Shown piece by piece: positions 22,201 through 25,200 of a stretch of 64,000 nt of DNA. The notes beneath the pieces are model-generated. The model saw only the letters and a program-made list of their open reading frames with translations. It searched no databases and was not told the DNA's origin. The position numbers and the translations under genes were made by a program. The stretch's first letter is position 1. Each line of letters begins with the position of its first letter. The DNA is from Bugula neritina (taxonomy: Eukaryota > Animalia > Bryozoa): the NCBI GenBank assembly GCA_964035545.1, contig OZ037766.1, positions 31,734,773 through 31,798,772 on the forward strand, written 5' to 3'.

Positions 22201-25200
22201 TATAGCTTTTTAAAATATGAATAATATAATTAATTAACATATTTTTGTGAATATGCAGCTGCTTCAAGAAAGAACCCTCTTTCACCAACTTACTCCTCTG
22301 GTACCTTTCTACTTAATCTGCAGTCAGATAAAACTATGGTTGCTTGGATTATGGTAAAATATGACAGGACGTTTCTCTTTTATTATGCAATCATAAATAT
22401 AGGACAGTCAGGTGAATTAAACAAAACATTGTACTTTCAAAATGTTTTTTTATCTAATTTTTTATTTGATTTTTTGATTTTATGTTTTTAGATTTCAGTA
22501 AACAAAAAGTTTGAAATATGCATGAATGTCTTTTTGCGTTATATATATATATATATATATATATATATATATATATATATATATATATATACATGTATAT
22601 ATATACATATATATACATATATATGTTGATAACATTAATTTTTTATTTACTATATAAACCTTATGTATATAACATATAGTTACCTGAAATATTGTATACA
22701 TATACCAAAATAGAAAGTGTGATTTTACACAACTTGGGAAGAAATGGTGTCTATAAACACATGTACATTTATTTGACATAATATTTTAGAATCAAAATCT
22801 CTCAAAGATGTGTCTTTTATGACTGATGGGACAAATTGGCCTCTTCCTTCTACTAGTATTCCAGACTTGAGAAATAAAGAGTGGGAGTTGTGTGACCATC
22901 GAGGAGAAATATCAGCTGAAAAATACCTCCTAAAGTGTATGTTTGGAGATGAAGAGCGACTCGTTTATAAATTGGGAGTTACAGCTAAAAGCTCTTTAAA
23001 ACTTGGCAGTATCCAAGTCTATGGAAACAGTATGTTGGTATATTGTCTATTTGAGCAATTTATAGAAATGTCTACATGAAGTTATGTGGTATAATGTTAT
23101 AACAAAAAGTTGCAGTAACAGCGGTTTATAGTTATTAAAATATCATACATTAAAGAATGTTTTTCACATTGCATAAATATATCAAAACTATTATTTTATG
23201 ATAAGAAAAGCAAAGCCTCTGATAGTTTAAAAAATATTAGAATTGTTTTCCTTAACTAGTTTCAGAACCTAAGTGCTGATCATACTTTATGTACAAACTG
23301 ATTAAAAGTGTTAATCAAGTTTACCAATTTAGATATTTTTAATAGCATAAGCACGGTATTTCACTTTAACTATATAAGATATCATATTTCATTTAAGCGA
23401 GTCCAAAGGTAGTCTTCGCTCCAAGGCTTTTTCTTCCAGAGTTGTCAGCGGTAATTGACGGAATCATACGTATACCTGGTCAGACATACAATGACCAACT
23501 TAAACGTGCGTTCTATCGAATCAGGACTGACAATCTAATCCAGTTATCATATATGATTCTTTATACCAGGCTTGGAATTGATTGCCCAGGAGTAGAAAAC
23601 TGCTGTAGGTATTCCGTTTTATTTTTCTCAATTCTGTTTGTTCCAGCTACCAAATTCTTTGTAGCACTTTGTTGCATTTGCATTACATACTTCGAAAAAA
23701 TATATTTCTAAACATACTTCTGTTTAACAATTGTCTGAAATTGTTTTGTAATGCATCTAAAATAAATATTTTGATTAATTTAAAGCTAGTTCTTGCATAA
23801 AGTCTTTTTTATTATTTGCATTCTAAATTAATAAATAATTGAATAAATTGCCACAACTATATTTCGAGAGCAGCCGCGGTCTAAAAGTTAGAGCGCTGGC
23901 TAAATGAATCTAAGTTCCTATCAGTCTACTTATCTTTCAAATAATTGCCGAGTAAACACTTACGCTAATTCAAGTAAAACCCTTTTGTCGCAGTTCTTTT
24001 TGCAATTCTGAATATTTATGTGCTAATACTGTGAGCAGCATGATTTTAATTGACAACTTGTTTGAACGTTGTTTAGAAGTAGAGTCTTCATTGATTAATA
24101 TTTTTCCATCATCAACTCTAAAATCAGTCATATCTTGTCTCGTCTTTTAGATAATCTTTTGAATCAAACAGCAGTAGACATTACGCCATACTATCAATGG
24201 TCTGACAAAAATATTAGCTACCCTGAATGGCGAACGTGCACCTATCTAAATGACATATCACATAGCCGTTATGTCATCACCAGTTGTGACCAACTTGTTC
24301 CCTTTACCAGACATCCACATGTTCGGGGAATAATTGTCAGAGAAATTGAATATCAACACAAGTTCATTCTTGCAGAGATAGAAGTTTACCAGTATAATAG
24401 AGATGAGGGTAGGTTTTGAGTAATTATATAAAGTAAAAACTATAAGTAATTATAGACACCTACTTTGAAATAATATTAATAAACTTAATAACTGAGGAGG
24501 CTCCTATTTGAACTATTTCAACAACATAGCACATGCACAGTTAATTCGATGAATTTTTTAAAATATTATACTTTATAATATTGTTATTAGCTTTTTATTA
24601 GGTTCATATATAAGCATGAAGTTTAGGCAAATATATATTTTTAGATGTATTAAAGAAACTGTGTAAAAAAGTGACAGAATTTACTCATGAATTTTGTTTA
24701 CAACATTGAAACATTTAAACCTTTAATCTGAAAAACGTGATAGTATATTTTCTAATTAAAAACTTATAAAATGTTTAAGAAAATTACCTGTGTGAAAGAA
24801 AAAAGTTTAAGCAAAAATATTTATTTTAGAGCAGTATTTCAGTTTGAACAGAAGGTGTGTAGAAAACTGTCCAGATGGATACGAATTCAATGCTGGGCTG
24901 ACTTGTATTGAAAGTGGTGGAGTTGATGAGAAAACTTGTTACTTTGAAGCTCCAGTCTTCAATGAAACTAATTATATGTCTATAGAGAAAGGATGTACTC
25001 GTGTTGCAGGCGATCTAACTCTTGACTTTAGCGACTTTAGAAATGGTGTGTAACTTCTTAGATTCTTAGGATATGTGTTGTCTTAGGTGGGCATCTGTTT
25101 AACTAGGACTAAGATTTTCTCTTTAATTAGTATTTTTATAGTTTGCAAGCTAGAAATGTTTTCAATTCTCGAAAAAATACTCTAGAAAAGCCAGCAATAA

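Follow-up and report, generated by a model that had tools for sequence, protein, structure and literature searches.

Putative tandem lectin-fold domains inside cysteine-rich domain II of a kinase-less EGFR-like gene family of Bugula

The layout of the EGFR ectodomain is very constant across animals, and kinase-dead EGFRs and an expansion of EGFRs in bryozoans are known (PMC4914847). The corresponding survey included only kinase-bearing sequences, and no lectin insert is mentioned in it (PMC4914847). Mosaic membrane-bound F-type lectins with degenerate sites are known (PMC5712786). Kinase-less L-domain proteins form the nematode IRLD family (PMC9262388). Bryozoans show allorecognition (PMC9546547); no bryozoan recognition genes were found in the literature searched. 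The locus presented here was originally predicted to encode a fusion without known equivalent, i.e. an EGFR-type receptor with lectin-like domains inserted in domain II. No description of such an ectodomain was found in the literature searched (few subscription papers covered) and no counterpart was found in the protein databases searched. The gene is made of known parts in an undescribed arrangement.

The window is the whole stretch of 64,000 nucleotides that was analysed (C2:31734773-31798772 of a 216-Mb assembly, which was also the genome scanned). It carries one copy of the gene on the + strand and one inverted, convergent paralogue (Table 1). The Bugula gene shares with EGFR/ErbB the signal peptide, L1, the furin-like domain II, L2, domain IV and one transmembrane helix. 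It differs by the absence of kinase, by a short loop instead of the dimerisation arm and by an insert of 286 aa in domain II; moreover, the second half of the ectodomain is repeated in Bugula paralogues. The C. elegans IRLD proteins (irld, hpa-1, hpa-2) are likewise a lineage-specific expansion of kinase-less receptor-L-domain proteins, whereas the Bugula family keeps the four-domain EGFR ectodomain, a transmembrane helix and a long tail and has lectin-like inserts. The two families would be independent in origin. The likeness to Hydractinia Alr is a functional analogy only: both are clustered single-pass receptors of a colonial animal with divergent tails, some with ITAM/ITIM (PMC9546547). 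Alr proteins differ in that they belong to the immunoglobulin superfamily and have shown roles and allelic polymorphism.

Table 1. Exons of the + strand copy and position of the inverted copy. Positions are those of the window. i1 to i4: insert exons.
Feature	Position	Strand	Content
Exon 1	19228..19324	+	Start codon, hydrophobic signal peptide; length equal in the inverted copy
Exons 2-5	19499..21207	+	Receptor L domain 1 (EGFR domain I); Pfam Recep_L_domain E 0.008 (exon 2)
Exons 6 and 6b	21363..21757	+	First part of cysteine-rich domain II; Pfam Furin-like E 5e-7
i1	22259..22411	+	Front half of lectin-like domain 1; Arg79 equivalent and Cys loop lost in this copy
i2	22790..23029	+	Second half of domain 1, with the terminal strand and a conserved pair of Cys 15 apart
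i3	23398..23604	+	First half of domain 2, with an invariant Asp, a Tyr in place of His52, a counterpart of Arg79 and a Cys-x5-Cys loop
i4	24151..24408	+	Second half of domain 2, with a pair of Cys 16 apart and a terminal strand in which L-x-E is invariant
Exons 11-13	24830..26516	+	End of domain II, then receptor L domain 2
Exons 14-15	27755..30340	+	Cysteine-rich domain IV; Pfam GF_recep_IV E 5e-5 and 1e-4
Exon 16	30631..30742	+	Short stalk, most of the transmembrane helix
Exon 17	31603..32433	+	276-aa tail: tyrosine-rich, acidic then lysine-rich; no kinase
Inverted convergent paralogue	36860..51805	-	Insert exons at 45816-45664, 45418-45179, 44294-44088 and 43852-43595

The ectodomain order L1-CR1-L2-CR2 followed by a single transmembrane helix is the EGFR/ErbB layout. 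The best PDB matches of exon 6 are ErbB4, ErbB3 and EGFR (E 2e-12 to 1e-10; ErbB4 2e-12); exon 11 weakly matches the insulin receptor (E 0.008). The EGFR/ErbB scaffold that had been proposed is therefore borne out both by exon 6 and by the layout. An origin from the insulin receptor was rejected on account of the presence of domain IV and of the ErbB best matches. No cytoplasmic tyrosine kinase domain is encoded: the tail ends in a stop codon and no Pfam match was found in it. The sole kinase match listed in the window lies 16 kb upstream of the receptor gene and has its own stop codon, which excludes it from this gene. It is the 3′ end of a receptor tyrosine kinase gene (566-2928, + strand; best single-stretch PDB matches: KIT, FLT3, PDGFR, VEGFR). 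Similar kinase exons are found further upstream, at C2:31674695 and C2:31712420, which suggests a tandem trio of kinase genes. Small contigs (C15, C33, C66, C170, C176 and others) hold numerous kinase genes in which TAA and TAG, but no other stop triplet, occur in frame; these contigs probably use the ciliate code and come from a co-assembled ciliate.

The host gene model has 18 exons and encodes 1,225 aa with 0 internal stops. Its least certain exon is exon 4 (20453-20491), which is outside the insert. The insert follows the exon ending in CLEECP (21757), precedes the exon starting with EQYFSLN (24830) and totals 858 nt, i.e. 286 codons (i1, 153 nt; i2, 240; i3, 207; i4, 258). All four exons have AG/GT ends, and the five flanking and internal introns are all in phase 1. 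The original prediction was a symmetric phase-1 insertion in domain II of four phase-1 exons (about 286 aa) that could be skipped in frame. Exon count, length and phases are exact, the motifs quoted for domains 1 and 2 are found in the translations of the insert exons, and the model lacking these four exons remains open (939 aa).

EGFR domain II carries a long dimerisation arm; at this position, 11 residues are found between the flanking cysteines in the + copy and 15 in the paralogues of contig C6. Exon 6 is followed by a phase-0 intron; this intron and the phase-1 intron of the insertion presumably correspond to introns 6 and 7 of human EGFR. The insertion point had been equated with the EGFR exon 7/8 junction; the end of human exons 2-7 at residue 297 (exons 2-7 correspond to residues 30-297) is documented (PMC12462975).

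The inverted copy has exon lengths and splice sites identical to those of the + copy through exon 14; its stalk is intact and shorter. Five further genes, located on contig C6, carry all four insert exons in the same phases (24-48% identity). The splice phases of the insert are thus conserved in 7 genes, each of which has kept the four exons and their splice sites. The insert is not due to chance, since 6 paralogues as well as orthologues (another Bugula assembly and metagenomes) have its four exons too, in unchanged splice phases. Orthologues in independent assemblies rule out an assembly artefact. Pseudo-exons are ruled out by the dN/dS of the insert: 0.26 (+ copy versus orthologue), 0.32 (between the window copies) and 0.24 (C6 gene versus its orthologue). 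These values (0.24-0.32) are no higher than that of the L1/CR1 scaffold (0.40). The insert is under purifying selection.

When the genome was searched with an i2 profile, C2:30657289 (E 0.006) and C2:30599101 (E 0.035) were matched weakly but over the full length. Both matches are located about 2 kb after a furin-like exon, and the family is therefore considered to reach the 30.6-Mb cluster of C2. At the kinase-bearing EGFR-like loci (C4, 24.26 Mb; C5, 9.99 Mb), the space between domain II and L2 is too small for the insert. Absence of room for it in these two genes indicates that the insert is derived. In C6 genes, the module made up of exons 11 to 15 occurs in repeats (six in one gene). All repeats that were checked start at the phase-1 acceptor located just after the insert; because they share this acceptor, one phase-1 intron is both the insertion site and the repeat boundary. 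In several C6 genes (C6:9405001-9615000), an additional exon, which encodes about 75 aa and was not recognised, stands between the last domain IV exon and the stalk. Partial gene fragments are also found on C6, at 9507048-9521210 and 9555683. The C6 tails examined are kinase-free and lysine-rich, with few tyrosines.

All database proteins matching the insert belong to Bugula neritina: EB796_024956, from GCA_010799875.2, and metagenome fragments. EB796_024956, the public model at the orthologous locus, is a fragment only. The orthologous stretch of GCA_010799875.2 has about 80% nucleotide identity along the whole gene, introns included; identity being only this high, the window and GCA_010799875.2 would come from sister Bugula lineages or species. 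A DHHC palmitoyltransferase gene precedes the receptor in both assemblies (exon at 14312-14563, + strand, in the window; B. neritina draft), which confirms synteny. Apparent frameshifts were observed near the end of i2 in the draft assembly and in metagenome contigs (L031:9209-9450, L028:766-1000). They are likely assembly errors, as the frame is uninterrupted in L030, a further contig of this locus, and may explain the fragmentary public gene model. An i4 profile had no match outside Bugula among 1.84 billion proteins. Two metagenome scans, a plasmid tblastn and a search for exon 6 homologues were blank or uninformative. The database blanks are attributed to the sparseness of bryozoan data. 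One further candidate, P0003, was an unrelated repeat.

Homology links i2 to i4 (hhalign probability 75, E 2e-5) and, more weakly, i1 to i3 (probability 34, E 4e-4). The insert is thus a two-exon unit in tandem, in agreement with the two homologous domains originally predicted. An ESM Atlas model of a B. neritina fragment, which includes two thirds of domain 2, has TM 0.59-0.60 to F5/8-type-C proteins; this is a single low-confidence source (pLDDT 0.56), and unrelated beta proteins also reach TM 0.54-0.55. The named feature matches of the Atlas are discoidin-clan (0.88-0.90). The Atlas was blank or uninformative for i2. Pfam searches with single exons, including PF00754 and PF22633, gave no match for the insert, each query being half a domain. 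PDB profile searches with the insert exons matched no known family; a match to NEMO was rejected as due to chance. AlphaFold models of half-domains had pLDDT 48 and 46, and four fold searches without match are uninformative either way. An F5/8-type-C/F-type-lectin fold had been predicted: the Atlas model and the motif spacings of eel agglutinin speak for it, whereas the Pfam, PDB profile and AlphaFold half-domain searches brought it nothing. A discoidin/F-type-lectin fold is considered likely, on the basis of this model and of the residue patterns given below. At least 150 exons of the genome match PF22633 (F-type-lectin-like), in large clusters on C3-C9 and nearly all for the front half only; the insert exons are absent among the 150 matches listed. 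These exons are a plausible donor pool for the insert. The PF22633 matches amount to a very large expansion of the lectin fold in this genome.

Residues of the inserted domains are numbered here according to eel agglutinin (PMC5712786). Two spacings are equal in both: Tyr-Arg is 27 in 9/9 domain 2 sequences, as is His52-Arg79 in eel, and the Cys pair is 16 apart in 9/9 i4 exons, as are Cys108-Cys124. The invariant Asp is located 36-38 residues before the invariant Arg (41 in eel agglutinin). In the terminal strand, the Glu147 equivalent is invariant in domain 2 and not in domain 1. All these correspondences were picked post hoc and have no chance estimate. The cation motif h2DGx is found as hhDG in the window copies and the orthologue, but with a hydrophobic x; C6 paralogues keep the Asp only. 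Domain 2 has an expanded form of the pair Cys82-Cys83, Cys-x5-Cys; in domain 1 of the + copy, the pair is deleted. Domain 1 of this copy has neither the Arg nor the Cys loop, both of which are still present in C6 paralogues. The Cys50-Cys146 bridge is absent from the inserted domains.

The canonical fucose-binding motif, H-X24-R-X-D-X4-(R/K), had been reported as not evident, and it is indeed missing: Tyr replaces His52 in 9/9 domain 2 sequences, Arg79 is kept, and neither R-X-D nor the final basic residue (Arg86) is found in domain 2. The fucose triad is broken in all copies. With His changed to Tyr and with R-X-D and the last Arg missing, the inserted domains are not F-type lectins proper. 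A cluster of Tyr, Thr-Arg and Asp-Cys-Pro-Gly-Val-x-x-Cys is invariant at the binding-cleft position of domain 2 in paralogues that are only 35-41% identical. Likenesses to F-type lectins (FTP/fucolectin; furrowed and CG9095 of Drosophila; oyster bindins) are a size of about 130-155 aa, a tandem pair, Asp and Glu at calcium-ligand positions in domain 2, an Arg79 equivalent, the spacing of the Cys pair and a terminal L-x-E strand. Differences of the Bugula domains are His52 changed to Tyr, absence of Arg86, Cys-Cys changed to Cys-x5-Cys, absence of Cys50-Cys146 and absence of a Pfam match. Unlike F-type lectin domains added end to end, the Bugula pair is inserted inside another domain.

The window copies have 91-100% identity in most ectodomain exons; exon 2 (Fisher p 5e-8 versus the other ectodomain exons) and i3 (8e-7) reach 77-78%. 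Exon 2 is the most divergent L1 exon (77% aa identity). The introns flanking i3 in one window copy cannot be aligned with those in the other, yet they align to the orthologue. This suggests an old duplication followed by homogenisation through gene conversion, from which exon 2 and i3 were exempt. As synonymous divergence is also high in these two exons, their divergence indicates that they escaped gene conversion and is no evidence of positive selection. An LTR-type element lies in intron 4 of the inverted copy (47495-50147). It has a 457-aa gag-protease ORF, no reverse transcriptase ORF was seen in it, and its 122-bp direct repeats are identical, which suggests a recent insertion.

An ITAM-like motif, defined as Yxx(I/L)x6-9Yxx(L/I), a pattern matched by 3.7% of shuffled tails, is found at tail residue 226 of the + copy and kept in the orthologue. 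The tail of the inverted copy differs and has no such motif at the corresponding position; its repeat region matches the pattern elsewhere. Paired tails differing in an ITAM-like motif are suggestive only, as a reading of the sequence. Two small single-pass proteins flank the receptor genes (17685-18524 and 34724-36023, both + strand). They have a Ser/Thr-rich stalk, a transmembrane segment and a Lys-rich or Tyr-rich tail; no useful Pfam match was found. A tandem duplicate pair (53896-64000, - strand; about 93% identical) encodes, in several exons, a membrane protein that was not recognised; its tail is rich in Lys and contains Tyr.

It is put at roughly even chances, from the gene models, that the family encodes kinase-less recognition or adhesion receptors. 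A duplicated EGFR gene would have lost its kinase, and a tandem pair of two-exon discoidin/F-type-lectin-fold domains would have been inserted midway in cysteine-rich domain II, at its phase-1 intron. The insertion would be a single event that predates both the expansion of the family to at least 7 genes and the split of the two Bugula lineages. The product would be a single-pass surface receptor, whose L and cysteine-rich domains could serve as platform and stalk. The inserted pair would occupy the EGFR dimerisation site, and the dimerisation contact could be replaced by the binding of a cell-surface ligand. Possible ligands, bound mainly through domain 2, are proteins and glycans other than terminal fucose. 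The output could pass through tail tyrosine motifs recruiting cytoplasmic kinases, or be adhesion alone where the tails of paralogues lack these motifs. The two window copies would be a pair with different tips and tails. Module repeats (up to six) starting at the acceptor after the insert fit a spacer role.

Among the other explanations, a decoy or modulator of growth-factor signalling is unlikely. L1 and L2 would still bind an EGF- or insulin-like peptide, and the insert would block or re-route dimerisation with kinase-bearing receptors. Both L domains are under purifying selection, the insert adjoins the shortened dimerisation arm, and exon 11 aligns weakly with the insulin receptor; in addition, two L-domain proteins that lack a kinase, hpa-1 and hpa-2, are modifiers of EGF signalling, and a role as peptide sinks was proposed for IRLDs (PMC9262388). 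However, 286 residues between L1 and L2 would be expected to disturb a two-domain ligand clamp, and up to six L2-containing repeats, together with the low identity of paralogues, are unlike a single conserved ligand. Alternatively, the insert would be a non-binding structural spacer or homo-oligomerisation module, with degenerate lectin folds that have no other role than to give an adhesive surface protein its shape or length. The broken triad of all copies, the loss of Arg and Cys loop from domain 1 of the + copy and the length-changing repeats bounded by the insertion intron fit this proposal. It is given a shade less credence than a decoy. Against it, the cleft of domain 2 keeps its invariant Tyr, Thr-Arg and Cys-loop cluster, and i3 is kept distinct between the window copies.

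The insert could also be an alternatively spliced cassette or have a different fold; the main product would then be an ordinary kinase-less EGFR ectodomain and the lectin reading would be wrong. Skipping keeps the frame, the public model EB796_024956 is a fragment, no spliced transcript-derived protein was found in the databases searched, and profiles and AlphaFold do not back the fold. This is the least probable of these explanations. Purifying selection implies that the exons are translated in at least some isoform, 7/7 genes keep the four exons and their splice sites, and the motif spacings agree with the Atlas result on the fold.

The recognition or adhesion receptor remains the preferred reading. 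That the family is more specifically a bryozoan system of self/non-self or symbiont recognition, built on an EGFR ectodomain, is a speculative extension. In such a system, the variable tips could be L1 exon 2 and i3, the length of the stalk could be set by the repeats, and tails with and without the ITAM-like motif could coexist; this allocation of roles is equally conjectural.

In this family, the intron of domain II at which foreign domains entered also delimits a repeated module, and a growth-factor receptor has been turned into a kinase-free multigene family. This raises the question of whether the L1-L2 ligand site can persist when entire domains are accommodated in domain II. The family provides concrete candidate genes for bryozoan recognition.
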